A stretch of DNA of 64,000 nt from Podarcis muralis (GCF_964188315.1 NC_135669.1:16244001-16308000); one strand, 5' to 3'. Positions 2,741-25,000 are shown, counted from the stretch's first letter. Numbers and translations: made by a program. Notes: generated by a model not told the origin, from the letters alone.

Positions 2741-5700
2741 CTACTTGGTGCCTTCATCGGGGTTGCCCTCGCCGTCCGTCTTGCCCTCCTCCTCCGTCTT
2801 CTGGTCGTCCGTGTTCAACCTCTGCTGCTTCTTGCGCCGCACGCACTTGACAGCCACCAGCACCAGGATGACCACGGCCAGGAACCCTCCCACCGTGGCG
2901 CCCACGATCACGGCCACCGTCGAGTCCCGCTCGGGAGGTTCTGCGGAGGAGACACAGCCGAGACTAGTGGGGGACGGGGCTGAGGAAGGGCACGCGCAGC
3001 AGGCTTGATCCCCCGAGGGGGCTTGGAGAGAGGGGCTAGGGGAGCAGGGGTGTTCCCCGCCCAGGCTTTGCAGGAAGGTGGGCTTCTGGGGTGGGCGTGG
3101 CCTTTCTAGGACGCTGCAGCACAGCAGGTAAGAAAAGCGTGTTGTTGTGGGGTGGGTCCTAGGGGGAGAGGGAGACCATAGACGGCAGGCCTCCCGAAGG
3201 CTGACTGACCTTCGGTGATCACTATCAGGCTGATCTTGCCGTGTCCCTTCTGCCGGTCAGGGGGGTTCATGACGTAGCAGTGGTAGGTCCCTTCGTCGTC
3301 CAGCTGCACGTTGTGGAGGGTGAAGGAGACGTCGTTCTTGATGGGGTTCCCGGTGAACTCCACGCGATCCCCAAAGCGGGTCTGCTCCATAGGAACAATC
3401 TTCAACCTAAACTGTAGAAACTGGAGACGGGGGGGGGGGGCGTTAAGGAGCAGAGACTGCCGCAGTCCACGCAGGACGCTCTGGAGAGCTGCGACAAACT
3501 GATATATCACACCAGGGGAGCTATCTTGAATTGGGGGTACCCAGGAAAGCCCCGCCCCACATAATCGATCACATGAAGGGATCCACGCACACCATTTGAA
3601 TAGCAATGCCCATTAACTTTGGTTGGGGGGAGCCCTCAAGTATTTTGTTGTGGAGGCAAAGACCCCTTGGCCCCTAGGACTTGGGCTCCTATGTATCACA
3701 CACCCTTTTTAAAAAAAATAAAATAAAAACAGGCTTCAGTAGCAAAGACTATCCCTGGGACAGGTGGTTGCAATAAAACGCGTGCCTCTGAGCACATGCA
3801 CGAGTGCATTCCGCTTGATCGTGGCTTAAAAGGGGCAGCAGAGCTCATCTGTTACAGCAAACACAACGAACAGAGTTCTGGAACCTTAAAGACTTGCTCA
3901 TTTATTGTGGCAACAAGAAACTTAGGCCACAGTAGACGCTTGGCAGCTTCGAGTAGAATAAGTGCTACAGCCCGCTCGCTCCACACACATACATTCACAG
4001 GAACCGCATTTGGGGACGGGTTGCAAGGACTTCCAAAGTCCAGGCTCTGCCGCTAAGTTGTTGTTGCAGCGCCCTCTCAGCTGGGCACCCAGTGCAGGCG
4101 ACCCAGTTTTGCACTCCCCTCAATCTGCCTCTGCGCCGCAGCATGCTTCGAGGAAGTGACCCGCCCAGCTCAGCTGCGGGCTGCAGACTCACCATCTCTT
4201 CGGTGCAGTTGTCGCATTCCTGGTATGTCCAGTTAAGGGAGAACTGCTTCTTCTCCACCCGGTAGCAGGAGTTGAAAGTGCAGGTGAGGCGGACGGAGGA
4301 GCCATTCAGGGCCATGATGGTGAAAGGCGCCGTGACCTCCATGCCCAGGCTGCTTGGCACTGCCGGAAGAAGAGGAGAACAGGGTAAGACAGGAGAGGCG
4401 AATCTACACCGGTCAGTCATAACTTTTAAAATGTGTTATAAAAATGTGACACCAGAGGGCGCTGCAGAGCAGCAATCAGTCCGCCATGAGAAATTGCATT
4501 GAGAGTTATATAGGGTTGTTGTTTTTTCTAATAGCCTTTATTTCATAGCATTTATACAGATCAGTGCAGATCCAGCCTCGCTTGATCTCCCACCCCACCC
4601 ACCCATTACACACGAAGGGCAGCAACGTTGGGTCGGCAACCCCCCCCCCCTTTTTGGAGGAAGGCGGACTCTTGACAAAGGACCCTCTGGGAGTTGGTTG
4701 GTTTGTTTGTTTGTTTCCAAAGGAGAAAGTGCTCAAGACAGTTCTATATTAAGTGATCATTTAAAACGGGATCCCAACTGTACCGGAAAAACGTAGCTGG
4801 AGAATTTCATAGAACAAGCCTGACGGGATAGCTCAGTCAGTAGAGCATAAAACTCTGCACCTCAGGGATGTGGGTTCGAGCCCCACTTTGGGCAAAAGAT
4901 CCTTGCATTGCAAGGGACTAGATGACCCTTGGGGTCCCTTCCAACTTGACAATTCTTTGATGGCCAGAGAAGTGGGACGAGCGACTCCTGGTTGCAATGT
5001 GGACCGCTCCTATTCAAGGCGCCAGGCAGTCAGTCCTGCCCCTTTCATCAGCACTCCATTAGGAACTTAAGAAACTGCATTTATACCGAGTCAGACCATT
5101 GGTCCATATAGGCCAGTACTGTCAACACTGACTGGCAACAGCAGCTCTCCAGGATTTGAGGCAGAGGCGTCTCCTCCTGGCCCTACCTGGAGATGCCCGC
5201 GGGGGTTGCTCCTGGGACCTTCTGCATGCAGCGCACATGCCCTTTCCAAACCTCCCCTCTCCCCTTGTTTTTCTCCCCCTCCCGCCAGCATTCTGGCCCA
5301 GTTATTTGGGATTATTCTTTTTTCTAAACGAGGTTTTTGGGGGGAGGGGGCGTCTGAAAACTTCCCCGCCAGCCTGAAGGCAGAGCGCTCCCCCTCTTGC
5401 GCGCGTTGCTGGAGAGGCTTTGGCTACGGAAGGACGCGCGCTGAGCTCCTGCGTCCGCCGCTGTTCCGTCCCGGCTACGGACGGCAAGAAGCCGGCCAAC
5501 AGCTCCGCCGCTTCCGTTCTCCCTCTCCGTTTCTTCGCGCTCATCGCAGCAGTTCCTCCCAGGTCCCCCTGGCTTTGAAGGCAGATCTCCAAAAGGGTCT
5601 CCCCTCACCCTCACCTTCTTTATCGATCAGCCACGCGGGGGATCAAGGCGAGTTTAAAGCGTGAAACTGCAGATGCTCAGAATAGTTCAGTTTCTGATCA

Positions 5701-7595
5701 GGGCTGGCACACTATATTCTTTTTGTTTTGGCGTTAACAGATCAGGAACGTAGAAGGAATTGCAGAGGACGAAACGGCGGCTGGGGAGAGCGGGGAGATG
5801 CCTGGATTATGTACCTGTTCCAGGACTGAACTAGCAATACCTGCCACCACGTCTGGGGTCTGACATTCCCAGGCTGCACCACTGCTCCGAACCAAAGCTC
5901 CTTCCGCGTGGCCCTAAGACCCCACCTGAGTCACCCCCGAGGGGATAATCATGGCAGCGTGCGTGCCCGACTCTCCACCCTGGGCGCATGCTCAGGAGTA
6001 GAGGGATTTCTGCTGCCCCACACGGGTATGGGTGTCATTCTTCCCAATCGCTGCTGCAGCTGGGTGGCAGCCCTGGGGCTTTAAGGAGACGCCTGAGGCA
6101 GGCAGTCCAAGGTCAGCTTGTTTCTGTCAGTCCCTTTTGCTGACGGCTGGCAAACCGGTCTCCTGGCTGTTCCGAGGAGCCCTCAGTGCTGCAGAAGCTG
6201 CAGCCTCTGCAGTGCCTTGAATGCAGCAATTGCTGAGGCAGTTCCTGGCTCGTCAGATGCTACTGCAAAACTGGAACACATTCAACACACACCTCCCCCT
6301 CGCCGTACCCCGGGAGCCCCGAGGGGAAGACGGTGCACCCTTAGTTCAGCTGGGATCTGCAGCAGAGATCAGGGGGCTCCTCGCCGAGCTGGCTACCCAG
6401 AGCAGCGTCCTCTTCTCCCCACAAGCCCAGCCGCAGAAAGCCTGGCCTTTCTCCCCCTCATCCTTTCCAAAACTGTCGCCTTCGCGCTTTTTGCAGACCC
6501 TTCGCGCTCCTGTTTGGAGAGGCAGACCGGGCTGTGTGCTCGACCAGCGGGACACAAGCCTTGTAACGGAGGGGGCCGAGTAAGAAGGGGCTGGGAGTGG
6601 GGAGTAGCGAAGGCCCAGATCCAGTTCTGGCCCCGGGGTCCTAGGCGCACCCTCCTCGTCTCTTCTCTCCCACATGGAACTGGTGATCACGGACTGCTGT
6701 AGAAAGGTCGCGCCTGGCAGCAGGGAGCCACTGGTGGCTAAGTCGGCCTTTACAGAGGCCCTTTGGAAGGTGAGAGCAGGAGGAGCCACTGCTGGGCATC
6801 GCCAGCGGTGGCCAGGAAACCCTCGAAGGCTCCCACAAGGCTTCTGAGAGAAGCCCCTATGAATGCTGGGGAGTGGGCGCCGGCGCAGTATCCTAGGGGG
6901 TGGGAGGCAGTGGTTGGCCCCTGCTGAACCAAGAGGGGGTTCTCTTCCTGCGGAGTCGCCTGGTGGCAGCTGCATATCCCCCCCCCCACACACCCCACAG
7001 TCTAAGCGAGGGAAGAACCTGTGCCTCATTTTGGGAGGACCCAAGCAGGCGTGGGAGGGAGCAACTCTGGTCCCCAGGATAGGAGGCGGAGCAGCATCTG
7101 GCAACCCCGGCACAGCTGTGTGTGAGAGAGAGTGACCACATGCACACTGCCCTCAGCCGCTGCCCCCCGAGGCCCGGAGCGCTTTCCTCGGCATTGATAT
7201 TCTCCGTTGCTGGCGACTGATCCGGCCAAAAATTGTGTAGCTCTGGCGAAGCACAGGCTCTGGCCGGTTCTTCCAGCAAATGCACTGAGGGGCGCTGGCC
7301 AGGAAAGGGCCCTCCCCGAAGGCGCCCCCCAAAGACGCTCCCCGCCCGCCCTGGAGCCAAGGCAAAGCGGCGCCTCCTTCTCCTCCCTGGAGCGCAGCTG
7401 TCAGTGGGACTGCGGAGCCGGGCAGATCCGCAGCGGCCCTCGCCAGATTGCAGCAGCAGCAGCCCCCTCCCCGCTGCTCCCCTCCTGCCTCAGCTCCCCA
7501 TGCCAGGACCCCAGAAGCCACTTACCCAGCGCGAGGCAGAGGATGAGGAGCGCCAGGGCGTGCGTCTTCCGGGGCCGGGGGGCTTCTCGGCTCAT
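2741..7595 (-). CDS. SCN2B: Sodium channel beta-2 subunit; 4 coding exons: 7526-7595, 4193-4359, 3210-3420, 2741-2940 (648 nt, 215 aa)
   Basis: All junctions are GT-AG and in frame. Translation: MSREAPRPRKTHALALLILCLAL|VPSSLGMEVTAPFTIMALNGSSVRLTCTFNSCYRVEKKQFSLNWTYQECDNCTEEM|FLQFRLK...YHCYVMNPPDRQKGHG...|EPPERDSTVAVIVGATVGGFLAVVILVL...TEEEGKTDGEGNPDEGTK*. Exon sizes 70/167/211/200 and the FNSCY cysteine are typical of SCN2B. Confidence 0.97.
4450..4464 (+). promoter_or_regulatory. CTCF-like motif in SCN2B intron 1
   Basis: CACCAGAGGGCGCTG closely matches the CTCF core consensus CCASYAGRKGGCRS. Motif match only. Confidence 0.45.
4822..4958 (+). mobile_element. tRNA(Lys)-derived SINE with CR1-type tail
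   Basis: Head resembles tRNA-Lys(CTT) with A and B boxes (tagctcagtcagtagagc, ggttcgagcccc), followed by gcattgcaaggg..ctagatgacc. Confidence 0.7.
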
Positions 7596-9924
7596 CCTCC
7601 GGGCCTAGCGGGGAGAGGGGGAGGGGGCCGGGCGGTGCGCTGCTTGGCTTGGCTTGGCTTGGCTTGGGTGGAGGGGAGTGTCAAATGCGGGGTTTGGACT
7701 CGGAGGCATACATCATGTTCTGGAAGCTTTATGGCGAGGGCTCCAAGATGGCCGGCTGGAGGGTTTGGTGCTTCCCCTGCAGCCGCGGTTAAAAAACGGG
7801 GGGACACATCATTTCTGTGGTTGGCGAATCTCAGCAAAGGAAGTGGGAGGGCAGGAAACCCTTATGTGCCGGGAATGAGAGATGCTCCCAGCTTCCGCGG
7901 GGGCGGCGGGCTGGGGGAGAGCGGAGGATTAATCTCGACACCCCCTGCCTGCCCTCCCCGGGTTCTGGTCAGGGAAGGGTCATAGCTCAGGGGCAAAGCA
8001 CCGCATTTGGACGCAGAAGGTCCCAGATCCAACCCACAGCAGCATCTCCAGGTAGGACTGAGGAAAGGCACCTGTCTAAAGACCCGGAGAGCATCTTCCC
8101 GCCAGAGCTGACTGGACCTGGACCCGGAGAAAGCAGTTGTCACTGTTGCTACGTTCTTGGGCTGCTGCTCTTTCCCAAAGAGCAGAGCCGGCGGCCGAAG
8201 TCAACTTCTCAGCCACCCGCTTCAGAGGGACGTCTTCTTGTCCTCCAGCCCAAACTATGCACGGAGTGCCTCCTGGAGCAAATGCCCATTTCAAGGGTTC
8301 CCTCCCCAAAACATGCTGAGCAGGAGGAGAAGGCTGGTAGGGGACCTTCGCGCGGGGGTGGGGGAAGAATTCCCTGCTCTGCAAATGATTTATTGCCTGA
8401 CCCCTCAATTTGGTCCTGGGGGAGCCAAATGCATTTCATATTCCCAACTAAAGCAACACAACCCCGCGCAAGAGAGAGAGCAGAGCTGCTCCCCCCGACT
8501 GGCTATGGGACTCTTACGCGCGCGCACACCCCTTCCTCTTTTCGCAGCAACTACCCCAGCGACTGGGCAGGGAGGGCGAGAAGGGTCAAGAGTATCAATT
8601 TAGGCATCCCAGTGTGCATTAGGTAATCCAGCTGCTCTTCCCCATCCCCCACCGCGCGCAATCGTCCAGGAGGACAGGAAGTGGCGCGGCAGCATGCTCC
8701 AGGCGAGTAGGTGGCAGGGAATGGATGGATGCTCTCGCGCCTCTTCCACAGCAAGCAAACAAGACAGACCCCACGCCACCCTCTCTTCTCCCCTCCACCA
8801 AGCGCTGTTTCCCACGGCTGCTTCCTCCCCCTCCCAGTTGGCCCTGAGCTGCCCAGTCTGCGTTGCCAGTGGGAGCTGCTGGGGACCAGTCGGGACAGGG
8901 AGCCAGCGGCGAATCAAACGCCCCGCTCCCCATACAAACACACTGCAGGCTCCGAAGGCCTCCCCACCCACAAGTGAATGTGGGCCGGGCGAGGCTCCCC
9001 CGGAGCTGCCTTGGCTATCCTGCTTCCTTCCTTGGGCACTGGCTGAAGTGTCGGGTGCGGAGAAAGAGCTCCCTTAACTTCTCCGCTTTCTGGACGCTCC
9101 AAGCGCGCCTTGCTGCAGCTGCTGGGAAATGTCGGAGGGCGGCAACGCGAAACCAAAGAATACAGCCGGCTGCGCTTCTGCACAGGCTCTGGGTGGCGTC
9201 TCCCGGGTCCGCTCAGAAAGAGCCCGCGCAGAGAGGGCTCTGGCAGTGTTGTGGGTACGCTTTGGACTGGTCTCTCATCTGCTGGGGCTGCTTAGGGGTG
9301 AAGGAAGAGACTTGGCTACTGTGGGGAAGGGGAGCGAGGAAGGGACTGTTGAGCCGCTCCAAGCGCCAGCGCAGCGCCTCGCCGGCCTATCCCAGAGTCA
9401 CGTCTTTCTACTGGGGCGCTATCCATAGTCCTGATGCAAGCGGCCTCCCGTCACTCTCGCCTTCCTGATAGAAAGTAATGGTGAGCTGGGCTCATCCTGC
9501 GCAGGAAGGAGAGGGCACCGAGCCACCAACCTCAGTCTGCACCTGCCTGCCTTCTTCTTGACATCTATCCGGTTTTGTCTTTTCAGGGGGGATGGAGACA
9601 AACACAGAATTAGTTGTCTTCTGTTCTGCAAACTGTTATCCTTCCAATCTTCCACCCTGGCAGTCCTAATGGGCATCAGACCCCAGTGGCTTCTGAGTCC
9701 AGATGGTTTCACTGGCTATTAACCCCAGGTGGAGGTGTTCATACACCTACTAGAAAGAGGAGAATTTTGGGTCTATCACTCATGCTCCTTATGCACTGGG
9801 CTAGGCAAGGAGGGCTAAGGAAGCTGGAGAATGGCCCAGCTCTGTTGGCTGTGTGTACCTGACTTGTCTGAGGCCCTTCAAATCTACCCTGTTGGGCTCA
9901 GCCAAATCCGATGCACAGGGCTAG

Positions 9925-10170
9925 TACAGTGATACCTCAGGTTAAGTACTTAATTCGTTCCGGAGGTCCGTTCTTACCCTGAAACTGTTTTTAACCTGAA
10001 GCACCACTTTAGCTAGTGGGGCCTCCTGCTGCCGCTGCTCCGTCGGAGCACAATTTCTGTTCTCATCCTGAAGCAAAGTTCTTAACCCGAGGTACTATTT
10101 CTGGGTTAGCGGAGTCTATAACCTGAAGTGTATGTAACCTGAAGTGTATGTAACCCAAGGTACCACTGTA
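9925..10170. mobile_element. Tc1/mariner-type MITE, family A
   Basis: TA-flanked TIRs CAGTG(G/A)TACCTC..GTTA / TAACC..AGGTACCACTG; internal tandem duplication of acctgaagtgtatgta. Confidence 0.85.
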
Positions 10171-11017
10171 TATAAGTCATATCTAGTAGTCACTGATAGC
10201 CCTATCCTCCATTAATTTGACAACAGTGACAGTACACTGACTTCTAGGGTGTTTTGCGCTCACAGAGACTGCCCATCACTACCATCCTGGGCAGGTTCCA
10301 ACTGGCCCCCTCTGAAGTAGATCCCGCTGCACTTACTCCTCCTTAAATTTAAGGAGCACTTCATTAATATTTCAAGGCACTCTCCTTTACCAGGACAACC
10401 TGCGCAGCCCAATTCTGCAAAGTCAGAGCAGACTTGCAGCTGAGTCAGTCCCTTACGCTCGCGAAAGGAGTCCTACGTCCTAAAAGGCAATTGGCAGAGG
10501 CCTGGAGTCCCAAGGGGCAGAACCAGCCCCCCTCCCAGAAGTTTGGCACTGTCTTCCAAAGGACAGGGAAATGTGGCTTAATGGGTTTGCTAGGTCCACC
10601 GTAGTCCCACCCTGAAAGACGTAGTATCCCTCTGCATGATAACAACCGCCGGGATGACAAGAGGGCAGGGTGCTATTTCTCCCATGTCCCGCTTGTGTGT
10701 TTCCCATTGAGGCACCCGGTTGGCCACAGGGAGAACAGATGTTTGTACCAGATGGGCCCCCATTGGCCTGATCCAGTTGTAATATTACCTGCTGAGATTA
10801 CCCTTGGTGGACTAGGAAGCTTTGGCCATTTTCACTCTTAAGGCCATTTCTGTAGGGATGTGAATGGATGCTAGGAGAGGGTATAGTTATTATATTTTAT
10901 CCTTCCTCACAATTGTTAAATTTCAGAGTGCATCCCTTTGCAGCTTAAAAGGGAAGCTTAGATAGGTTAGTTTTAATCTTTTTAGTTTAAGTAAAGTTTA
11001 GTTTAGTTTAGATTTAA

Positions 11018-11488
11018 GGTGCTGGTTTTGACCTTTAAAGCCCTTCACGGCCTAGGACCCTTGTACCTACGGGGCCGTCTCTCCCAGTATGCACCACGGA
11101 GGACCTTAAGGTCCATAAATAGCAACACCCTAGTGGTCCCGGGCCCTAAGGAAGTTAGATTAGCCTCAACCAGGGCCAGGGCCTTTTCAACACTGGTGGA
11201 ACGCTCTGCCTCATGAGACCAGGGCCCTGCAGGATCTGATTTCTTTCCACAGGGCCTGTAAAACAGAGTTGTTCCACCTGGCCTTTAGCTTGGAGCCAAT
11301 TTGATTCCCTCCCCCTCTTTCTTTTTCCTTTCTCCTCCTGTGATGAGGCTGCATTTTAACATTTTAATGTTTTAATGTTGCATTTTAATCTTGTTTTTAA
11401 GTTGTATTCATTCAATTTGTTTTTATTATTGCTTGTTAGCCACCCTGAGCCCGGCCTTGGCTGGGGAGGGCGGGGTATATAAATAAAA

Positions 11489-11527
<39 letters not shown>
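11018..11527 (+). mobile_element. L2 LINE 3' fragment
   Basis: ORF2 C-terminal peptide VLVLTFKALHGLGPLYLRGRL..RTLRS, followed by an L2-type 3' UTR and (TTA)n tail. Confidence 0.8.
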
Positions 11528-11623
11528 TAATCCAGGGTGCTTTAAGGCAGACTGGATTCTCCTGGTATTTCATCCTTTTCTCCCCTCCAAAACAACAATC
11601 ACAGAGTCTTGTAAAAGGTAAAA

Positions 11624-11780
11624 TACCATATTTTCCCATGTATTGCCCTCATGTATTTGGGGGACTCAAAATTAAGAAAATGGGGGGAGATTGCCCCTGT
11701 GTATAAGACTAACCCCCCTTTAAACATTTTTTTTGGGGGGGGGAAATACAACCTAGTCTTATACATGGAAAAGTACAGTA
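11624..11780. mobile_element. Short TA-flanked MITE
   Basis: Imperfect TIRs taccatattttcccatgtat / atacatggaaaagtacagta. Confidence 0.6.
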
Positions 11781-13054
11781 ATATTCTGCTAGTTTTGATT
11801 TTGTTAGTTTTTTGTGGTGTGCTTTTTGTTTTCTGTGAATTCTCATTGTTTGGGCCTAAACCCTGTATATTTTATAGACTTATTTATTATTTCAGGTATG
11901 ACTATACTACTTTTCATCAGAAAGAATCACCAAGCAATTTACCAAAAATTAAAATTAAATGCAATATAGAAAACCTCAAAATCCATAAATACAATATAGA
12001 AAACATCAAACTCCTAACATAGAATTCTACTCAATCATAACAAAAGAAAGAAATCCCTATGGAAAACCGCATTTTAAAATTTCCTGCTCTCTGCCGCCAT
12101 CTGGTGTTGCACATTTATAGCACATTCAAATAACTGTTTCTTTACTAATGAGGCTGAGTCCAAACTCTTGGCAGTTACGGATTTCATAAAACTCTCAGTA
12201 CATCCACAAAGACATACTACAATACCAGCAATCAAATGCTATGAGGCTAAAATCACATTTAATCTGGGAATATACAAAATTTACATGGCAGTACATAACA
12301 AAAGTGACATTCCTTGTCTAGAACAGAAGTTTAAAAAGAAATGTGAAGTGGGAGAAGTAACATAATAAAAATGTGTAAATGGGACAGAAGTCTAACACTG
12401 CAATTCATGCATATCCACTCAGAGGCAAGTTCCATCAAGTTCAATAAGGCTTACTCCCAAGTAAACACACACAGGACTGCAGCCAAAATAAATTGTTATG
12501 CTAAAAGAACTTAATTAACTGACTTCCTCCTTCCAGGACTATGGGTCAAAAGTTTGTAACTTCCCCATAGTTATAATAACTTTCCATCAAACATGATGCA
12601 ACTTGAATTGGGCATTATGTAATTACAACTATTTCACAAGGAATTCTGTTTTTGAGAAAGCAAACTTCTGCTTGTAAATTGAAACCGACTGTAAATTCTT
12701 AAGGTGTGAATCATGTCATCCCATAAGCATGCAGAGATCTGGTTTCTATCAGAAGCTTGAAGAAAGGACATATTATGTTGTTGATGGGTTATTTGCCACT
12801 TTACTCATGGCAATGACTCAAAGCAATTTTACAAGCACAATAGAAATACTAAAACCAATGACAACAAACACAATTAAAAATCTTTTTTTAAAAAAAACTA
12901 AAGTAAAAAACCACACCTTTATACCGTAAATAAAACACATGCCTAGCCAATCATGCCCCACCAAAAGCGGCCACAAATACTTAAAACCTCTTCAAATTAA
13001 TGACCAAAAGCCTGGGTAAAAATGAAGGTTTTTGCTTCATTTTTAGATACAGAT

Positions 13055-13890
13055 GATACCAGCTGAGTTTCCCTGAAGAGAGCATTTCACAAAGAGGGAG
13101 CCACCACTGAAAAGGCCTGTTCTCATGTTGCCACCCTCTGGAACTCCCATGAAGTAGGCTCATGGAGAAGGGTCTCAGGTGACATTTGCAGGATCTGGGT
13201 TGGTTCATGTGGGGAGAGGCAGTCCTTGAGATATTGGTGTCCTAAGCCACATAAGGCTTTATAGCCCAAAGCCAACACTTTGAACTGGGCCTAGAAATTA
13301 TTTGGTAGCAAGTACAATCAGGTCTGTTGTCTTTGTCCATGGAGTTTTCTTGGCAGGGATACTGGAGTGGCTTGCCGGTTCCTCCTCCAGGTGGATCACG
13401 TTTGGTCAAAACTCTCCACTATGACCTGTTAAATTAGTGCAACATTGTTTTGCTGGAGGAGACTCCTGAGAATCCCATGAACTGCAAGAAGATCAAACCT
13501 ATCCATTCTTAAGGAAATTAGCCCTGAGTGCTCATTGGAAGGACAGATTGTGAAGCTGAGGCTCCAATACTTTGGCCACCTCATGAGAAGAGAAGACTCC
13601 CTGGAAAAGACCCTGATGTTGGGAAAGATGGAGGGCACAAGGAGAAGGGGACAACAGAGGACGAGATGGTTGGATAGTGTTCTCGAAGCTAACAGCATGA
13701 GTTTGACCAAACTGCGGGAGGCAGTGGAAGACAGAAGTGCCTGGCGTGCTCCGGTCCATGGGGTCACGAAGAGTTGGGCACGACTAAACAACTAAACAAC
13801 AACAATCAGGTCTGGATTAGTGTTATGTGCTCAACCTGTCTTGCCCTGTTGAGCAACCTAGCTGCTGAATTCTGCACTAGCTCTATGTAG
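13055..13890 (-). mobile_element. Old L2 fragment interrupted by the BovB insertion
   Basis: Degenerate L2 ORF2-like sequence on both sides of the BovB TSD. Boundaries approximate. Confidence 0.55.
13327..13801 (+). mobile_element. RTE-BovB insertion: 3' end (13451-13801, +) preceded by an inverted piece (13327-13429)
   Basis: RT C-terminus KLRLQYFGHLMRREDSLEKTLMLGK..., tail CTAAACAACAACAA and 13-bp TSD acaatcaggtctg (13314-13326 / 13802-13814). Confidence 0.88.
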
Positions 13891-14286
13891 CCCTATGTTG
13901 CACTAATTCAACATAGAGATTACCAGAGCATTGACAACAGACGTTAGGCTGTGTTTGTCCTGTCCAGAATTAGGAAACACCATGGTGAATACATACTGTC
14001 TAGGGTTGCATCTACACAGCTATAAAAAAAAACCTCTGAAAATGCTCTGGGGGAAAAGCCATTTTAAAGCCCACAATGGAAAATTTCAGAGAGTTCCAAT
14101 TTCAGCTCTACAGCGACATCTGGTGCCACAGTTTTATAATGCTTTATAACGTTTTATTTTTACTAATGTAGCTGAGTCCTAGGACTCATTCCAATTCAAA
14201 TCTAAGGGGGAACCACTAACTGACATTGAATTTTAACTTCCATTAAGAACTGTTTGATGTTGATAATTCGTTACAGATTAGCAACA

Positions 14287-14289
<3 letters not shown>

Positions 14290-14319
<30 letters not shown>
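14290..14319. repeat. (GT)n microsatellite
   Basis: Direct reading. Confidence 0.95.
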
Positions 14320-14321
<2 letters not shown>

Positions 14322-15492
14322 CCATATAGATATATATAGTCATATATATTCGTGTGTGTGTGTAATGCAAACTTTGTAGGATTTTTTGTTTAAATGTGAT
14401 TAACAATTAAACTCCTCATTAGTATAATAAATGACAGCAACCCCCCCCCCCCATGGACAAGCCCGCCCCAATCTCCTCTGAAGTTCCACTTGCACATAAC
14501 AATGTTGGCTGCATAATGGCAACAAAATATGGAAAATTTCCTGAATTCGTGCTAAACTTCTCAGTATCATTCCAATGTTAACATACGAACTGACGAAGCA
14601 AGCAAATATTTTATGCTTCTGTAAGGTGCATTGAGTGGTTTTTGAGAAAGGCAACCCGGTTAAACAACAGAAATAACAACAATCCCGCCAGACAACTAGT
14701 CTCTGCTTGCTCTGTGATTGCATAAGGTGACAAGCAGAGGCTAATCTCCAATCTTATCATTGTGGGAGTACAAGCTAAGATCAAAGCTAAGGCTCTGCCT
14801 GCTCCTGGCTTGAACTTTGAGCCACCTGGCATCAGAAGATATGGGGTGACTGACTAGTGGGCGCCCCCTCTAACCTGCTAAGAATGACCCACAGAGTTCT
14901 CAGGTTGAAAAATGTCCCCAGCCCCCCTGCATTAAACCAGTGCTGCCTGGGGAAGCAAGAGACATGTCTCTTGCTTTATCTAAATGCTTTTCATTTTGGG
15001 CAGTGCTGGATGCTGGTGGAAAGGGGAGGCTTCCATTTTCAGGGTGATGGCAAGGAAGGAGTCACTCTGTGGCACTCAATAAACTTCAGCCAAGGACTTT
15101 CTCTCTTATACATCTGAAGGAGGGAGAAACAGAGAAGGGTGGGTTTCATGTTTCAAAGAAACTTGATAGTTGCTCGACAGGAACTTGACCTGGCTGCTTT
15201 TAAGGTAAAGCTCTCCAGCGCTGTCAAGGCATTGCCTTTCCACAAATTAAAACAGATCAGAGGCCCCAGCTGGAACAGATGGCGGGGAGGGGGCTGGGAA
15301 AGAGCCAGCCACATGTGACCAGGGCAATGGCCGAAGGAGCCCTCGCAGCGATAGGGCTGGGAGTGATGACAGGGGTGATGACAGGCCCAAAGGGAGCCGA
15401 AGGAAAGGCATCCAGGCTTCAGCCAGATCACTTTGGTAACACTCGTAGGGACCATGTAGACCACCGTGGGAAGCCTCACTACCTTGCCAATC

Positions 15493-16018
15493 TGTAGTTG
15501 TGAGTCGAGGACCATCCACCCGCATAGGATTATAATAAGACACACAGACACATTATTTTTGGTTAATGGGCAAAATTAGGCCACAACTTTTATTGGTTAC
15601 AGCATGTGAGTAGTATTGGCTTAGGCGTTGGATGAAACAGCAATACAAGACTCCACCCCACACAGCCGGGAGTCATATCAGGGTTAACAACCAATGGGAG
15701 GAGCTTGTTGATGCAAATACAACTGGAAGCTCCCCCATGACGTCACCGGAGGTCCTGCCATGGCCCTAGCCACTAGCAGGCATCGGACAAGATCCACGAC
15801 CGCTGGATTCCTTTAACGGAATACCCAAAAGAGGAGGGGTAGATGATGGCGCAATGGGGCTTCATGGGTCCATCAACACTAAAAGCCTTTCAGAACCCCC
15901 ATGTCCTCAAACCAGTAACCCTCTAAGAAACAGATGCTGGAGACAAAATCAGGGGGTTTGTTGTCTGCCTGCCCTGACCTCCCATCATTCCTTTTCCTTT
16001 TTCCTTTCTTTCTTACCA
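15493..16018 (-). mobile_element. Probable solo LTR of another family
   Basis: TG/CA-compatible ends, minus-strand AATAAA near 15589, CRE TGACGTCA at 15738-15745 and octamer ATGCAAAT at 15711-15718. No TSD found. Confidence 0.4.
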
Positions 16019-16089
16019 TATAATATCTGGTTTTTTAAATTTTTTAAATAAATCATATATTTTAACTATAATTGCATGTACAAGTAGCC

Positions 16090-16410
16090 CTTTTTTCTTT
16101 TTGAAATCATTTTTATTTTATAACAATCCAAATGCATATCCATATACAGAGATTACGCTGAATCTCAAGATTTCCCCCCATCCCCTTCATGGGTCCAACT
16201 GTCAACATTTACAGCTGCATATTATTCCATAGTCTATATTTTATATCAATCCATATGGTCCATGATGTTTGTCACACATTACATTAGTGAGATTAAAATC
16301 CTGCTAAAGTTTTCATCTGCTTGCAGTGCTCTCTTAAATACAATATAATTTTTCCCCATTTTTAAAAAAAGTTTTTGACCTCATGGTTCCTATAAAAGAC
16401 TTCTTCCAAG
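16090..16410 (-). mobile_element. L1 3' fragment
   Basis: T-rich tail plus degenerate ORF2 end on the minus strand. Boundaries approximate. Confidence 0.5.
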
Positions 16411-16581
16411 CCTAACAGATGCACCAGGAAGCATTTGGGGGGAAGGAGGGGGTGTAGTTGGGGAAAGTGTTAACCCCCCCATGCCTTACAACCCCCCTTC
16501 CCCCATTTCAAAGCAATGCCCTGTTGCTGGAATTGGTAGAGCCTGTATGCGTATGTGTGCATCTTATGGGCGCATGTATGG

Positions 16582-17379
16582 CAAGGTTACCAGATTTTTT
16601 TCAATGAATCCAGGGATACTTTAAATAAATAAAAAAATAAATACTACACTTTTGGGACGTTGATGCTGCAGCGATGGCGGTTGCAGATGGCTGCCGCCTT
16701 GACCTCAACCGCCACGTTTCCCCTTCTTCCGAGGCTTCTATCTCCTTTCTCCATGAGCCTGGGCAGCCTGAGTTGTTGGTTCTTCAGTGGTGGTGGTGGG
16801 GGGGAAGTGGTGCAGGGTGGGTCAGGCATGGAAGGCGGAGAAGGAGGGCCGAGAGCGGTGGCGGCGGCGAGGCTCGGGCAGCACGATGCCTCCCTTCCCA
16901 TCAGAGCAGCCCCAATCCCATTCCTACTTGTGTGCAAACAGAAGGGGGCGGAGAGCCCTAAGCTGGGGAGGCTTCCCATTGCCTAACTGAGAGATCCCTA
17001 CCCCCTCCTGCTTGCACGCATTGAAGCCTCCCTTCACAGCTGAGAGATCCCCGCCCCGCTCCTGTCTGCACACAAGTAGGAGTTGGGAGGCTGCTCCGAT
17101 AGGCAGCACGAAGCCTCCCTTCACAGCTTAGTTGCTGGGGTCAGGGAAGGTGGAGGCAGCCCGGAAGCTGCATCTTAGAGTCCCTGCACCATCATCATAT
17201 GGGGACTTCCGAGCAGCTCCTGAAGCCAGCCAGAGCCAACTGCTCCAGGCTGCTGAGATTGCCGCTGCTGCGTTTCCCAGGGACATTAGATGAAATCCGG
17301 GGACATTCCGGGGATAGAATTTGTCCAGGGACTTATTCGCAAATTCAGGGACTGTCCCCGGGGAACCCTGGTAACCCTA
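16582..17379. mobile_element. Non-autonomous hAT-type DNA transposon (798 bp)
   Basis: TIRs (c)aaggttaccag / ctggtaacccta, perfect 8-bp TSD ATGTATGG on both sides, and subterminal ggggaca repeats. Confidence 0.8.
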
Positions 17380-17685
17380 ATGTATGGGCTGCAGCTCAGT
17401 GGTAGAACCTCTGTTTGCTTGCAGAAGGTCCTAAGAAGAGCCTGCTGGATCGGGCCAAAGGGGTCCTGTGTTATCCAGGATCTTGCTCTCCCAGAGGACA
17501 CCCACATGCCTCTTATGGGAAGCCAGCAAGCAGGACCCAAATGCAATTGCATTCCCCACTTCTGATTCCCAGCAAATGGCAATCAGAAGTCTACTGCCTC
17601 TGTGAGAGGCATACTCTCAAGTTCAACTCCTTGCAGCACCAGGGAGAAAATTTAGCAGCTGCCAATCAGCATAGACATTACTGTG

Positions 17686-17686
<1 letters not shown>

Positions 17687-17721
<35 letters not shown>

Positions 17722-17751
17722 GCATGCATGCATGCATGCATGCATGCATGC
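17687..17751. repeat. Compound tetranucleotide microsatellite (GATT)n-(TGCA)n
   Basis: Direct reading. Confidence 0.95.
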
Positions 17752-17851
17752 TAGCTTTGGCCCTGTCCACTTTGGGCAAAGCCCTTTTCTTTCAACAGCT
17801 TGCCTGCTGGCCAGAACAAAAAAGACCATTAGACAGGGTTGGTAAAAGATA

Positions 17852-17857
17852 TTTATT
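17852..17857 (-). promoter_or_regulatory. Candidate poly(A) signal of MPZL3
   Basis: AATAAA on the minus strand about 1.2 kb past the MPZL3 stop. Confidence 0.45.
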
Positions 17858-18057
17858 GGCTACAGGAGAGATGGGAATCCTCCTCCCCCAGCCCCTATCC
17901 ATAGAAAGGCCCCACTGAGGAATAAATGTCTGTGAAAGAGGAGGAGACAATGCACATATTGGCATCTGCACAGACACAAGCAGCAATTCTGGAGAGGAAA
18001 GTCAGGCTGACAAAGAGGAAATTCTTCTGTAAGTAAACGCGGAACAGTCCTCTAGAG

Positions 18058-18148
18058 CAGGGGCTCCCAACCGGTGGCCCACAGACCCCAGTGAGGCAGT
18101 GTAACCCACCCAGCGGGTCCACGGTACTTAGCTAATTGGGAACCACTG
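18058..18148. mobile_element. hAT MITE
   Basis: TIRs caggggctcccaa / ttgggaaccactg and 8-bp TSD CTCTAGAG. Confidence 0.75.
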
Positions 18149-19078
18149 CTCTAGAGTCTTGTCCCAGGGCCTCCCAAATGCCCATACCTTTGGGAGACAT
18201 CCTGAGGTGTGCATGGATCTCCAAATGAAGGCTCTTCTTACATTTTAGCTCCAAGTTGCTTGAACCTAGGAACGTAATACCAGCCCCAGGCACAAGACCA
18301 GCCGCCACACTTGGCTTTCATTACAAGGAAGCCCAGTCCCCCCACCATTACCTGCTCTGGCTCCACTACCTACGGCCAGCTTGGCTTTGAACCAGCAGCC
18401 AAGGGCAGCAGCCAAAGGAGAAGATCACACAGTGGCCCTTCTCTCTCCCTGGAAAGAAAAGCACAGTGAACCTCTCTGGTACCTTGAGCCATGGAATACC
18501 TGCCCAACTCTCTCCAAGCCACTGCAGGCGCTAACATCTGCCTGCTTCAGACATAGCCCAGCCCTTTCTCTACGTCAGTGGTAACTGGCCACCAGACACA
18601 AGGTGCCCACACCATTTCCAAGCATTTTGTTCTTGCTGTTGCTGCTGTTGTGGGAGTTGGAAATAGACAGGAGGTTTGTGCAAAAATATGGCAAGGAGGA
18701 GGACCACCAAGTAATACCTTCATGAGTCAAGTGCTAAAGGGTGGCTGAGTTCAACGCAGTGTGTGGAGAAGCAGCAGCTCAAGAGTGTCAATCAGCACAG
18801 GTCATCTTACCCAGAACCCAACAGTCCAAACAGACAGCTGTAATCCCCACAGGCTGCATTCTCCATCCAGAGAAACAGGGCAAGAGCCACACCAACCAAT
18901 GAGAAGCTGTAACATCTTGATGATCCGCAACATGAGGTAGAACCTGATCCCACACACACCATCAGAGCCCCCCTGACACCATGAAGTCCAGCGCCAAAGT
19001 TCCATTCATTGAAGAATCACTGGGATGTATCCTGCTGGCCTTCAGATGACATTCAGAAAAAATACCTTTGTCCTCAAG

Positions 19079-22000
19079 TCAGTAGGGATCCTCATCATCT
19101 GAATCCTGAACAGAATGCAAGAAGAAAAGGTCAAGCAACAGAGCCAACAAGACCCCTCCAAATGCCTCACCTGGTAGAAATTTACTGCTGGGGAAATGAG
19201 TTGGAGGATTTTGTGCTAAGCAACTCACTGAACCCAGATCTGGAAATGTCTGCAAGGAAGCTCAGTTAGATTCTGCCCCTCTCTTCTCTCTCACACAGGC
19301 CCAGCAGGCCAGAGTGTACACCCTGGTCTTCTTCAGAAACCTCCATATGAGGATGAGACCACTATGGGAAATGGACTGAGACACAATACTAGATTCATGG
19401 ACCAGGGCACACACTTGCAATGCCACTTCCTTGCGTAACCAACAGAATCCTTCAACTCAGTCTTATTTTGTACTCTTGCTGACAACCTCCTTGTATACTC
19501 TGGCTGAACACCAGCACAGAGACTCTAAATTCACCAGCAGCTCAGGCCCAAGAACCTACAGTTTGCATGTGCAATTGTGGACTTCACAACATTATCACAT
19601 AGTAAAATGTCCACGTGCCAACCACACAAACATCCATGTTCAGAAACAAAAGGGACAGACAACTCTCCCACCCATCCAATGCTTGGTCTTTGCTTCATTG
19701 GCAAACAGGGCTGGCCCAAAAAGACATTTTGCTACCTGTGGTGGAACAGTAAATGTCTCCTCCCCCAGGTCAAGGTACATAGAGCAAGTCATTTTGGCAC
19801 CTGAATGAGAAAAACCTGAAAGGGCCTCTCTCTGGGACTAAAAATATAATAATGGATTAAATCGCTGGCCATTTGTTACCCTTTCACAAGACCCTAAACC
19901 AGGGTTTCCCAACCCTGGGTCTCCAGCTGTTTTTAGACTACAACTCCCATCATCCCAGTGGTCAGGGATGATACAAAATGTAGTCCAAAAGCAGCTGGAG
20001 AACCAAGTTTGGGAAGCCCTGCCCTAAATCATTTGCCTCAGGCAGCTGCTTCACTCAAGCCTAACGACCAGCCCTATGAAAGGGTGGGAGAGTACTTCAG
20101 ATGAAGCTGTAGTATACCCCCACCCTGGACGCCAGCTGCAACAGGAAATGGTGCTCACCTGGCTCTCCTATCCCCCTTGCAGCCCCTGCCCAAAATGGTA
20201 CACCTGCTAGCAATGGCAGGAGGGAAAGAGAGGTTCTCCAGGGCCAGATGACTAGCATGCCTCCACCCTACCTCTCATGACTGAAGGGCAAATGGAAACA
20301 ATGGGTGGTATCTGAGAGTGGGTTTGTTCCTATGCCCCCCAACCCACTCCCCCAGGCCAGCCCTGTTCACAAACGGCTCCACCCTTCTGACACCTACAGC
20401 GGCAAAGGCAGAAGACTTCAATCTTGGCCTCTGAATTGGCTCAGGCATGAATGGGAATTTGATGGCAGGCCCAAGATGCTTTGCCCTCCCTGCTATCTTG
20501 CCAGCGTCAAACTGGCTGTGTGCAAGAATGGGACTATTGCTTACCAGACATCGCAGACACCAGGTGGCCAGCCTCTCCTTGCACTTAGGTCGCTCAGGTC
20601 TACAGGAAGAGCACAGAGGTGAGTCCAGCATGTGTCTCCTTTGCCTGCCTGGCACCCACCCCCCTCAAAACCCCCAGGGCAGTCAGTTGCACACCTGTGC
20701 CAGCCAGCTTGCTCTACCTCTGCCCATCCCCTCCAAAAGAAACCCAGTTATCCTGACAAGCAGCTCCTCACTGGTGAGGCTTGACCAGACTCGCCCTACC
20801 CTGCCCCCTGCATCTGCCACAAAGCTTCCATGGGGTTGCTGTTCACAGAATTGTGGAGTTGGAAGGGACCTCCAAAGCCATCTAGTTCAACCCTCTGCAA
20901 TGCAGGAATCACAGTTAAAGAATCCCTGACAGGAGGCCACCCAACCTCTGTTTAAAAACCTCCAATGAAGGTGAGTCCACCACTACCTGCTTCTCAGGTG
21001 GATCAACAGCCGCAGACCACCAGGCTCCCAATATTTATGCAGGAGCTGGCAGTAGGTGGGACATGCCTTTGAGGCAACAGGTGCAGTGGAGTGTCAATCA
21101 TCAAAACGCCTGCTGATGCCCTATGGAGAGTTCACAGTCTGAATCAGCTGCTCCACAATAACCACATATTCTGCTCATTATATTCCCCTTGGTCTGAGAT
21201 CATGGGCATGGTGAGGGTTGTATGGGGTGGTGTCATTAATCTCCATTAAGTGACCTTGAGTATAAGCCCTGGGAGCCCAACAAGAACCCTCAGGGCAGCC
21301 ATCCCCATCCCAAACGCTACATCCTGGTTCTCCCTGGTTAAGCATAGAACACAAAGTGCTCACTCTTCAGAGACTTCGATGGAGGACTTCTTGTAGCTGC
21401 ACTTCTTCTTGCTCTTCAGCACCCCGAGCTTCTTGCCCATTCGAACCAGGAGCAAGGCCACCACAATGGCAGAGGGGAGGAAGACCAGGATGGAGAGAAG
21501 CCCAGCTGACGTCAGCTGGAAGGAGGCCCCTGGAGAAAGAGGCAGGAATCAGGCCACAGGCACACCAGAAGGGCAGGCTGGGCCTCTGGGGAACAGAGGC
21601 TCCAAGGGGAACACCCAAGATCAAACCACAACTGAGTTTCCAACCCACGTGAGAAAAGAAGGCAAAACGCTGGATTAAGGAGGCGTCACAGCCAGTCCCC
21701 AGAACAGAAGATGGGAGGTAAGCACATACCATGCTAATCCCTGGCCAATGCACAAATGCTAACTGAGTCTTCCCATCAGGGTTTGAATTTTTCAGCAGAA
21801 ACATGGTGAAACATGAAAGCTTAACTAGGGATTTCCGCAGCAGACTCATTTTTGTGACTGGAACAAATCCATCAGCTTATTAAAGCTTAATAGTATTAAG
21901 GAATTTAAGGAAAAGAAAGTAACTTACAGAAAATAAAGCAAATTGCTTATGATGAAAATTAAAGCAGGAATACAATATAAACTGAATAAACTTATGAATG

Positions 22001-25000
22001 TTTTATACAGTGGACCCTCTGGATATGAATTTAATTCATTCCAGGGGTCTGTGCGCATCCCAAAAATTTCATAAGCAGAGACGCTGCTTCTGCGCACACG
22101 CAAGGCGTACAGAGCACTTCTGCGCATGCGCGGTGAAACTTTCAGGTTTGCCACGTTCGCAACCCAAAAGTTATGTTACCTGAAGGTAACGTAATCCAAG
22201 GGTCCACTGTAATTAGCATGAACTAATTGCAAATACCAATTGTAGAACTGAGAAAGAATCAAGAGAAACACAGACTCTGAACTTCTATACGTCATTAAAG
22301 TTCTTTGTTTTAGGCATGTTGCTTTTGTTTTGAGTTATTTGTTTCTTGGTCACATCAGGCCATTCTTCTTCAGCAATGGGCACTTGACACCAGTCCAAAT
22401 AAAAGTGAGGTGGCTGTCTATGTCCTTAGCCATGGTTCTACATTAAAATAAGAACGACTCAAAATAAACTTTTGGTTCTGTAGGCCTGGCAGGCTTTTGC
22501 AATCTCCAAAAGGGGGAAAGGGAAGAGACACCCCAAAGAACTTGCCTCTCTCCATGGCAAAAAAACAGGTCCTACTTGCAGGCTCACACAGATACAGTGA
22601 GTGAGCCCCACCCATTCTCTTTTCACTTTGTACTCACCAGCCTCTGGGGACTAAGACAGGAAGTGAGCAGATCTGACGCTCAACCCTAGCAGCCCCCAGG
22701 GTAGAATGAGGGCCTGTCTTCCCATTCTCCTGAAATAGTGCATGCTAGAAAATGCAACTGGTGGAGGATGGCAGAGGGGAGATGGCACTAAGAGGCTGGG
22801 ATTTTCAGGAAACAGCAACAGGGTTTTAATGCTCTTGACAGGAAAGGCTTGGGAGAGGCGGGGAGGCAGAACCACCATGGCCACAGGGACTAGAAACATT
22901 GCTTTACCTCTCTGAGTGACAGTCAGCATAGTCTGGGGGATGTTATGCTGCACATCAGGGGGATTTTTCACAGCGCAGGTGAACGTCCCATTGTCGTCCA
23001 TCGTTGGGTTGTTGATCCTAATGGAAGCATCCCGCTTGGCCACATTTCCAACCCAGGATACCCGATCACGGAAGGTGCCCTTCTTAGCTGGATAGGCATC
23101 TGACTGGTAGTGGAAGATCTAGAGGAGTTAAGAGATGGTGAGCACTGACAGCCGCACGGATGCTACTAGCCCAGAGATGGAAAAAAGACAAAGTCCCTAC
23201 CAGAGAAGAATGGCAAGCTAAGCTGTTGGGCTGTGCCGAAATGGCAAAACTGACTGGAAAGCTCAGGAACCACAAAGACCAAAACTTTAATAAAGAATGG
23301 GGGGGAAATATAATTTGTCTGGGAGACCACTGTAAGCAGATGAAAACATTATCAGGATTGCAATAACACTTGTAATGTAGCAGATACTATGGACAATATG
23401 GAATGATATAAAATATAATAAATTAATAAAAATTAAAATTAAAATTAATTCATTATTTATGCCCCGTCCATCTGGGTGGATTCCAACAAAATATTAAAAT
23501 ACAGTAGTCTGTTAAACATTAAAAGCTTCCCTAAAGAGGGCTGCCTTCATATGTCTTCTATAAGTCTGGTAGTTGTTCTTCTCTTTGACATCTGGTGGGA
23601 GGGCGTTTTACGGGACGGGTGCCACTACCGAGAAGGCCCTCTGCCTGGTTCCCTGTAACTGCCTGGTTCCCTCAATTATGCAACAACATGCAGTCGAAAA
23701 GCTTGACAGTTGGACCCATGGAGGGGAAGGTGGGAAGTCCAGAGATTCGGAGAAGTCTCTAAATATGGATATGTATTTTGTATTGTTATAATTCTGCACT
23801 TGTAAAATCAAATAAAAATTATTATTTTTAAAAAAATATAGAGATGGTGAGCATCATGTCCCATGACAGCCAAGAGCCAATGGCTCAAGGCCTTTCATGA
23901 GCCAATCTCACTGCAGCAACATTCCAGCAAGGTAGGCTCATGCTTCTGCAGGAAGGATGATGATCTCAGGGATACTGAAAGCCATTCAACTGGCACCCCC
24001 AGAGCAGCAGGATAAAGACTCTGCTGCACACATGCCACCATATACACCTTGTGCACCAGTGGCATCCACCACAGCAGAAGTGGCAAGCAGGTGTGCCACT
24101 CTGCCAAGAGCCAGCGGGCAGACAGTGAAAGCACCACTCACCGGCTCCAAACTGCCCCCTGCAAGAGGTCGGTATGTCCAATCGATGGTGAGCTTCTCTG
24201 TGACTGGGAAGGAGGACTTGAACCAGCACTTCAAGATCACAGCCTCACCCACAAAGGCCTGGACGTCTGAGTCAGCCTGGATCTCCAGGGAGTGGACTCT
24301 GGCAAGGGCTGCTGCAAAATATAACCCCGAGAGATGGGTTAGTCACCTGAGACCTGAGCAAGAGCGCAGAGGTGTTGACAGGAAGAGTTCCTGCTGCTCC
24401 CTCTTCTGCCAGACCCACTCTGCAGGAAGTGCTTAGCTCAGCAAAGGAACCGCCCACCGTTTTTTCCCTTGGCCAGGCAGAGATCAGGAACTCAACAGAA
24501 CCAGCCACAAAGGACTCCCAAAAACAGCACCTTCTGGTGCTCTGCAGCCTCCAGACATAGCAACTACCAGCAGGTGGCGAGAAGGGGCCCCATCATTAGA
24601 CAAAAGGAAGAAACTGCCTTGAGCGGATGACAAGGGGGAGCAGTAGCAATGTCTTGGAAGGATGGTGCTGTGCCCCCCATGGTCTCCCCACCCCCCAAGA
24701 TAGGCTGCAGTGCTCTGGAAGTGGAGGTTATTCTTTGCCTATGGCAGCACAATGTCTAACACCAGCCCCAGAGGCAGGGACCTAAACATTTAGTCTGGGG
24801 TGGGGAGGATTGGGGTGGGTTCCATTAGAAGTGCCAGTCTCAGTGCTTCCACCTCAGAGGGAAATTCCCATTTTCTTTCTTGTTGGGACAGATTTTTATT
24901 TTTCACTGTATCCAACGCTGCAGATCTAATTTTATTCAGTGGGTCACTCGTTTCAGTGGGTCTACTCGGAGTAAGAAAAGCACTCGGTACAACCCATCAG

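Follow-up and report, generated by a model that had tools for sequence, protein, structure and literature searches.

A gene-free interval between SCN2B and MPZL3 in Podarcis muralis and the probable loss of JAML on the squamate stem

The window analyzed here, a stretch of 64,000 nucleotides from the lacertid lizard Podarcis muralis (NC_135669.1:16244001-16308000), contains no N letters and harbors a cluster of immunoglobulin-type genes. The gene order put forward in an earlier sequence-only reading, which runs on to CD3D, CD3G, and UBE4A, is verified in this window for SCN2B, MPZL3, MPZL2, and CD3E. The first exon of SCN2B is called as an open reading frame encoding a signal peptide (7401-7595, minus strand; ATG at 7595), and the identity of the gene is based on its V-set and transmembrane (TM) exons, as well as on a 215-aa V-set/TM_ErbB1 gene at the equivalent position in Lacerta agilis. 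The SCN2B exon for the C-terminal half of the V-set domain, used as a control in the searches described below, lies at 3220-3390 (minus strand; Pfam V-set, 6.7e-11) and carries the motif DDEGTYHC at 3277-3297. The corresponding exon of MPZL3 (22903-23118, minus strand) matches Pfam V-set at 3.5e-6 and is 96% identical to L. agilis MPZL3, while that of MPZL2 (30070-30285, minus strand) is the best paralogous match to profiles of JAML, with E = 1.3e-11 for a bird profile and 5.2e-15 for a broad one.

The interval of interest, 7596-17851, is bounded on one side by the start codon of SCN2B and on the other by the 3′ end of MPZL3, as supported by RNA. This interval is free of genes and corresponds to the position occupied by JAML in crocodile and guinea fowl. 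In MPZL3, a sequence ending in DSDDEDPY precedes the stop codon, which is situated just below 19082, and the 3′UTR occupies 17851-19081 (minus strand). Stranded RNA depth over this 3′UTR is 17-43x at 17900-18499, falls to 1.7-3.2x at 17700-17899, and drops to zero by 17500-17699; therefore, the end point of 17851 that had been set earlier is correct.

The first part of the interval (7596-9500), upstream of SCN2B, is a GC-rich, moderately CpG-rich promoter-side region with a GC content of 0.57-0.64 and a CpG observed/expected ratio of 0.45-0.67. The interval aligns colinearly to the independent assembly of L. agilis at 84-92% identity, with interruptions by mobile elements. The MITEs and the BovB element named in the sequence-only reading are both recovered, the former as a 250-bp SINE/MITE-like repeat at 9923-10171, which recurs three more times in the window with 88-91% identity, and the latter as the 3′ tail of a BovB/RTE-type retrotransposon at about 13300-13900 (plus strand), in which an open reading frame at 13535-13795 has a BovB-like C-terminus. 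The segment 9491-10188, which includes the SINE/MITE-like repeat, is without an aligned counterpart in L. agilis. The same holds for 13327-13801 in the BovB tail, pointing to a lineage-specific insertion. Taken as a whole, the interval consists of the CpG-rich region upstream of SCN2B, a few kb common to lacertids, and approximately 3 kb of lineage-specific transposon insertions.

In three raw-read RNA runs, 13900-15499, 17500-17699, and most other parts of 12500-17850 are silent, and no splice joint outside a repeat is found within 12500-17850, which covers 5.3 kb of the 10.3-kb interval. Reads over the BovB tail fall on either strand and show mismatches and loose ends, the pattern that a multi-copy element would give. 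A 40-nt read pile at 16728-16767 (plus strand) was considered as a micro-exon and rejected, given that it has no canonical splice sites and nearly every read carries a mismatch; at 16740, for example, 384 of 391 reads carry C against the A of the window. The reads are abundant, diverge from the window on both sides of the patch, and have flanking sequence that is absent from the window; they originate from another locus.

JAML is expected at this position on the basis of its genes in Crocodylus porosus (XP_019398615.1) and Numida meleagris, which have the same flanking genes and orientation as in the P. muralis window. These genes comprise 5 or 6 coding exons within 3.3-3.5 kb, namely two V-set halves, one TM exon, and tail exons, none of which is present in the window. 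The whole interval was translated into 214 stop-to-stop open frames of at least 30 aa (113 on the minus strand and 101 on the plus strand; 13,092 aa). None of the 214 frames, on either strand, matches the Pfam models V-set, I-set, ig, Ig_2, or Ig_3 at E values up to 10, whereas the SCN2B and MPZL3 exons that share a split V-set domain are recovered as controls at 6.7e-11, 6.4e-4, 3.5e-6, and 0.13. A six-frame scan of the window for the F-strand motif (DxGxYxC type) likewise yields no site in the interval; the only sites are those of SCN2B (3277-3297), MPZL3 (22975-22995), and MPZL2 (30142-30162).

Two JAML profiles, one from birds and the broad one from 18 species, were searched exon by exon, with no joined spliced model. 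Both match the Ig exons of SCN2B, MPZL3, and MPZL2 at E values of 5e-15 to 1e-2, and the broad profile also picks up the TM exons of SCN2B and MPZL2. Within the interval, their best matches (E = 3.4 and 4.0) are noise. The TM segment and the tail exons with the Y-x-x-M motif are not found in the interval by full-length JAML profiles, although the same profiles detect TM and tail exons in crocodile and guinea fowl at E values of 5e-7 to 7e-22. Permissive tBLASTn with bird JAML (E up to 50) returns only noise. The original observation that the gap holds no recognizable JAML exon, IgV motif, or TM segment is thus confirmed by Pfam, motif, and JAML-profile searches with positive controls, and the interval 7596-17851 is plain intergenic DNA without a gene.

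One explanation for such an absence is an assembly collapse or mis-join that removed JAML from the P. muralis assembly. No support for such an event was found. The window is free of N, an identical layout is seen in the independent assembly of L. agilis, four more squamate assemblies share the adjacency of the two genes, and DNA runs from two studies contain 59-80% of the sampled words of the interval. The probability of an assembly error is consequently negligible.

Comparison of the locus across sauropsids places the absence in a wider context. JAML was reached via the MPZL3 loci of other species by reading the adjoining gene. The annotated order is MPZL2, MPZL3, JAML (18604-21902), and SCN2B in guinea fowl (Numida), and MPZL3, JAML (10001-13504), and SCN2B in Crocodylus. 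In the tortoise Gopherus, a 325-aa V-set gene whose first exon matches turtle JAML directly follows MPZL3. In contrast, MPZL3 is followed directly by SCN2B in six squamate assemblies (a gecko, a skink, two lacertids including the window, an anole, and a boa), such that the syntenic site lacks JAML in all six squamates, which represent five major lineages. The MPZL3-SCN2B gap measures 8.9 kb in L. agilis, 6.2 kb in the skink Tiliqua, 3.8 kb in the boa Candoia, 2.1 kb in Anolis, and 12.5 kb in Gekko kuhli, with nothing JAML-like in between; none of these loci contains N letters. The NCBI annotations of Lacerta, Anolis, Candoia, and Tiliqua have no extra V-set gene at the locus.

The phylogenetic spread of JAML was assessed with a profile search against a library that holds one representative per 50%-identity cluster of annotated or predicted proteins. 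JAML-clade proteins were recovered from turtle, crocodilians, tuatara, platypus, marsupial, lungfish, coelacanth, gar, bowfin, tarpon, paddlefish, and shark. No squamate JAML is among the best 150 matches (57 bits or more), a search that would miss JAML of a squamate if it shared at least 50% identity with turtle or bird JAML or scored below 57 bits. Orthologues from shark and fish reach 62-85 bits, and a squamate MPZL3 paralogue surfaces at 59 bits. Unnamed Logan cluster representatives among the matches are bird-, crocodile-, or mammal-like by BLAST, the least certain being P0145, P0150, and P0166 (63-73% identical to birds). Human MPZL3 (P0033) served as a paralogue label in the BLAST panel only and was left out of the tree.

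A tuatara protein, a UniRef entry, falls inside sauropsid JAML in the tree with support of 97/98, and on this placement tuatara has a JAML orthologue. Used as the query in a word search of proteins, it matches only tuatara, turtle, and birds; this search is not exhaustive, since the orthologues of Carettochelys and crocodile, at 44% identity or less, escaped it too.

These searches bear on whether JAML persists in squamates, either relocated or diverged beyond recognition. Squamate genomes rearrange readily, and the protein searches have blind spots in their 50%-identity representatives, their limit to the best 150 matches, and their word prefilter. However, a search sensitive enough to detect shark and fish JAML and squamate MPZL3 paralogues places no squamate protein in the JAML clade among those 150, and the annotated squamate loci mentioned above lack an additional V-set gene. 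Persistence is therefore very unlikely, and, judged by annotated and predicted proteins, squamate genomes probably hold no JAML copy elsewhere.

The same comparisons revise the expected architecture of the protein. A search image with two Ig domains, as adopted in the sequence-only reading, suits therian JAML alone; in sauropsids, platypus, and fish, the protein has just one V-set domain, which corrects the common assumption that JAML carries two Ig domains outside therian mammals. A PI3K-type Y-x-x-M motif is kept in the tail from shark to mammals. JAML belongs to the beta/MPZ family as an ancient member, combining one V-set domain, a TM segment, and a tail with the conserved Y-x-x-M.

JAML is absent in the six squamates and present in tuatara, crocodile, guinea fowl, and tortoise; thus, its loss is placed on the squamate stem. 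The best explanation for the gene-free interval, and a very probable one, is that JAML was removed from the MPZL3-SCN2B site on this stem, after the split from tuatara and before the divergence of geckos. The proposal that JAML had been deleted in the lineage of P. muralis is strongly supported by synteny in outgroups and squamates and by the tuatara tree, and widens to all Squamata. A literature search found no published report naming the loss of JAML in squamates.

As to the route, JAML may have been pseudogenized and eroded in place by point mutations, small deletions, and transposon turnover, with no single segmental deletion. Lacertids and gecko retain an interval of 9-12 kb, full of lineage-specific insertions. 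Moreover, a remnant is unexpected after about 250 million years by either route, and because a pseudogene in place would by then be traceless, the two are indistinguishable in this respect. Yet the intervals of Anolis and Candoia are smaller than the JAML gene body with its spacers in crocodile (15.6 kb) and guinea fowl (9.0 kb), and segmental deletion is a common route of squamate gene loss in a 2026 screen (PMC13005343). Erosion in place is therefore a credible but less than even prospect, and the very short intervals favor physical deletion over slow decay as the probable route.

That screen offers a close parallel. Its 53 “unretrieved orthologs”, including IL34, resemble JAML in that they are conserved, often immune, and absent from all squamates while their flanking synteny is kept; segmental deletion is the route proposed there, as it is here for JAML. 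JAML is not named in the main text or legends of PMC13005343. As described there, the screen required an intact Xenopus orthologue, which may have excluded JAML.

Whether the loss is tied to gamma-delta T cells is a separate question. Among costimulators of epithelial gamma-delta T cells, JAML is the one best described in mouse. It can be envisaged that the deletion of the T-cell receptor loci TRG and TRD deprived JAML of its main job, epithelial gamma-delta costimulation via CXADR, that selection was relaxed, and that the gene was then deleted. The conservation of the Y-x-x-M motif from shark to mammals fits such a scenario. In timing, the TRG/TRD deletions are dated after the split from the tuatara lineage (PMC11754216); JAML is absent in gecko too and present in tuatara, such that both losses fall on the squamate stem while tuatara keeps both. 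This overlap is real, and to this extent the earlier suggestion of co-loss stands; a decaying gamma-delta module and a causal link remain hypotheses, the two losses coinciding in time only.

Several observations argue against the co-loss scenario. In mammals, JAML expression or activity extends to neutrophils, monocytes, dendritic cells, and CD8 T cells, with its expression on neutrophils, monocytes, and CD8 T cells described in PMC5900413, PMC8959349, and PMC8404475; nor does the literature, all of it mammalian, make JAML function dependent on gamma-delta T cells. PMC13005343 (BMC Biol 2026) reports at least 53 further genes, with many immune genes among them, as lost on the squamate stem, and a chance coincidence is therefore likely.

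Two known systems help to frame the comparison. The TRG/TRD loss (2022, J Immunol, as cited in PMC11754216) is like that of JAML in being squamate-wide, immune, and on the same branch, with retention in tuatara. It differs in removing antigen-receptor loci and thereby a whole cell lineage, whereas JAML is one accessory receptor that is expressed more widely. Atlantic cod, which has lost MHC class II and CD4 (PMC13149839), sets a precedent for a single lineage losing genes that are partners in one immune pathway. [quoted passage not shown] On balance, co-loss driven by the deletion of TRG and TRD is unlikely. Less likely still is the more general proposal that JAML is an ancient PI3K-coupled costimulator whose indispensable role outside mammals lies in gamma-delta T cells and which was discarded once squamates lost them.

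Squamates are the only vertebrates known to be without gamma-delta T cells; thus, the association comes from a single lineage and cannot be replicated. The same singularity makes conserved genes lost on this branch candidates for a function tied to gamma-delta T cells. For JAML, its squamate-wide absence leads to the predictions that its expression would be concentrated in the gamma-delta T cells of birds, turtles, and tuatara, and that squamate CXADR would show relaxed constraint at the JAML-binding face. If the gamma-delta link fails, JAML becomes one more entry in the growing list of squamate immune-gene losses; if JAML does have its indispensable role outside mammals in gamma-delta T cells and was discarded after their loss, squamates would be a natural knockout that defines a gamma-delta T-cell gene module.

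The SCN2B-MPZL3 interval of the Podarcis muralis window (7596-17851) lies between two minus-strand genes. SCN2B begins at an ATG at 7595 in exon 1 and continues through two V-set half-exons, contained in open reading frames 3995-4420 and 3106-3606, to a transmembrane (TM) exon at 2741-2917. MPZL3 comprises two V-set half-exons (22903-23118 and within 23986-24252), a TM exon at approximately 21363-21548, and a last coding exon that ends in ...DSDDEDPY just above 19082. MPZL2 (30070-30285) comes next after MPZL3; beyond it, the plus-strand gene CD3E carries an Ig_5 domain at 45559-45957. Lacerta agilis shares 96% identity with the MPZL3 exon and 84-92% with the non-coding DNA of the window where it can be aligned, which identifies the animal as a lacertid other than L. 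agilis.

The sequence-only reading found no recognisable JAML in this interval, and profile-based searches confirm it. The window contains no N. The interval was cut into all stop-to-stop open frames of at least 30 aa on both strands, and none of the 214 frames matched an immunoglobulin-type Pfam family at E values up to 10, while the SCN2B and MPZL3 exons that each encode half of a V-set domain, treated in the same way, were recovered at 6.7e-11, 6.4e-4, 3.5e-6, and 0.13. In a six-frame scan of the window for the F-strand motif, only the three known genes match. Two JAML profiles, one built from ten bird proteins and a broad one from 18 JAML-clade proteins ranging from shark to bird, were run on every open frame of the window of 12-15 aa or more. 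Both pick up the Ig-encoding exons in MPZL2, MPZL3, and SCN2B (E from 5e-15 to 1e-2), and the broad profile additionally picks up those that encode the TM segments of SCN2B and MPZL2; such matches to paralogues agree with the assignment of JAML to the beta/MPZ subfamily in the literature (PMC10506104). Inside the interval, the two profiles score no better than E = 3.4 and 4.0, at the level of noise.

About 3 kb of the 10.3-kb interval has no aligned L. agilis counterpart (9491-10188, 10995-11527, 13327-13801, 15499-15850, and 16451-17381). The first of these segments holds one of four copies, 88-91% identical, of a 250-bp SINE/MITE-like repeat (9923-10171, 27577-27822, 51050-51290, and 59002-59224). 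Elsewhere in the window, a 561-aa open frame on the minus strand (52763-54445) combines a reverse-transcriptase domain (RVT_1) with a GIY-YIG domain, the pairing that marks a Penelope-like element.

RNA reads from two bulk runs, one single-cell run, and one contig set, all labelled with the species of the window, were mapped to 12500-18499. The MPZL3 3′UTR is covered at 17-43x down to approximately 17900, in the orientation that fits a minus-strand gene; depth then falls to 1.7-3.2x at 17700-17899 and to zero at 17500-17699, which bears out the proposed MPZL3-side boundary at 17851. Within the mapped part of the interval (12500-17850), substantial depth occurs at two places only. The first, a BovB-type tail at 13300-13900, has reads of both orientations that contain mismatches and end loosely, the pattern that a multi-copy element should give. 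The second is a 40-nt patch at 16728-16767 with many reads (the single-cell run contributes approximately 310). Almost all of them have C where the window has A at 16740 and continue on both flanks into sequence absent from the window. These reads thus derive from another locus, and their source is a highly expressed transcript that carries the short segment. The remainder is covered at less than 8x (e.g., 15500-15899 and 16500-17299), and no splice joints are found outside the repeat in the reads mapped to 12500-18499.

JAML was located in other sauropsids by way of their MPZL3 loci, from which the neighbouring genes were read off. Guinea fowl has CD3E-like, MPZL2, and MPZL3 in that order, then a 291-aa V-set gene (18604-21902) and SCN2B; the first coding exon of the V-set gene retrieves proteins of many birds named by NCBI “junctional adhesion molecule-like”. 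Crocodylus porosus has the order MPZL3, JAML (10001-13504, XP_019398615.1), and SCN2B. In Gopherus, a 325-aa V-set gene, whose first exon matches turtle JAML, begins 7.7 kb past MPZL3.

In five squamate loci, the gene directly after MPZL3 is SCN2B, with a V-set/TM_ErbB1 product of 186-219 aa. The spacing between the two is 8.9 kb in the lacertid Lacerta agilis, 6.2 kb in the skink Tiliqua scincoides, 3.8 kb in the boa Candoia aspera, 2.1 kb in the anole Anolis carolinensis, and 12.5 kb in the gecko Gekko kuhli, where the sole annotation in the interval is a 100-aa open reading frame that matches no Pfam family. The broad JAML profile has no match in any of the five intervals and recovers five JAML exons in the crocodile. 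Since all these loci are free of N, the absence is not peculiar to one assembly, and since it is common to Gekkota, Scincoidea, Lacertoidea, Iguania, and Serpentes, it predates the squamate crown group. The deletion proposed for this lineage is well supported and extends, on the evidence of these five intervals and the window, to all squamates, with the loss placed on the squamate stem. Given the time elapsed, decay in place may look the same as physical deletion. JAML-holding intervals measure 9-16 kb in guinea fowl and crocodile, far longer than those of anole and boa, which favours physical deletion. In the Candoia locus (L008:1-13880), an annotated minus-strand gene with a 107-aa ATP-synt_G product covers the entire MPZL2-MPZL3 region, which would be either an unusual annotation or an intron of great length.

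To survey the distribution of JAML, 1.84 billion cluster representatives, with relatives above 50% identity collapsed, were searched exhaustively with a profile; 35 matches fall below 1e-30. Among the best 150, species names were looked up for 30 representatives. JAML-like proteins are named in Carettochelys, Crocodylus, Gavialis, many birds, platypus, a marsupial, lungfish, coelacanth, gar, bowfin, tarpon, paddlefish, and a shark, as well as in the tuatara (Sphenodon A0A8D0GKF2, 190 bits); representatives without a name are bird-, crocodile-, or mammal-like by BLAST. The JAML-like proteins among the best 150 matches include none from a squamate, although a gecko MPZL3 is listed as a paralogue at 59 bits. 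A JAML translocated elsewhere in squamate genomes is thus unlikely, given the protein collections searched. A word-based search that used the tuatara sequence as query returned only tuatara, turtle, and birds, missing orthologues at approximately 44% identity. Maximum-likelihood analysis places the tuatara protein within the sauropsid JAML clade (support 97/98), far from the MPZL3 clade (100/100). The Sphenodon models (P0149 and P0167) have approximately 80 doubtful N-terminal residues and lack the conserved EEMVFYYYS segment, and this imperfect gene model accounts for the longer tuatara branch.

JAML had been described as a two-Ig-domain receptor, which holds for two unnamed members of the JAML clade, grouped with platypus and marsupial sequences, that have two V-set domains. 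It does not hold for JAML of non-therian species, which has one V-set domain, as seen in bird, turtle, crocodile, tuatara, platypus, lungfish, and gar (locus L002:20007-21902; proteins P0125, P0140, P0283, P0149, P0157, P0199, and P0206). Nearly all JAML-clade sequences inspected, from shark to mammals, carry Y-[IVML]-[TV]-M in the tail, a conserved Y-x-x-M motif of the PI3K type.

A tie between JAML loss and the disappearance of gamma-delta T cells had also been suggested. The deletions of TRG and TRD likewise postdate the split from the tuatara, which keeps both loci (PMC11754216), so the temporal coincidence is real. JAML is also present and functional on neutrophils, monocytes, dendritic cells, and CD8 T cells (PMC8959349; PMC8404475). 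According to a screen published in 2026, which covered 261 squamate assemblies, 53 genes, many of them immune, were lost in squamates, and segmental deletion is proposed as a main route; JAML is not named in its text (PMC13005343). Because many immune genes disappeared on the same long branch, one more is weak evidence for a module, and the gamma-delta link is a reasonable hypothesis based on timing. The loss of JAML is the same kind of event as the known lineage-wide loss of immune genes in squamates, to which it adds one further case.
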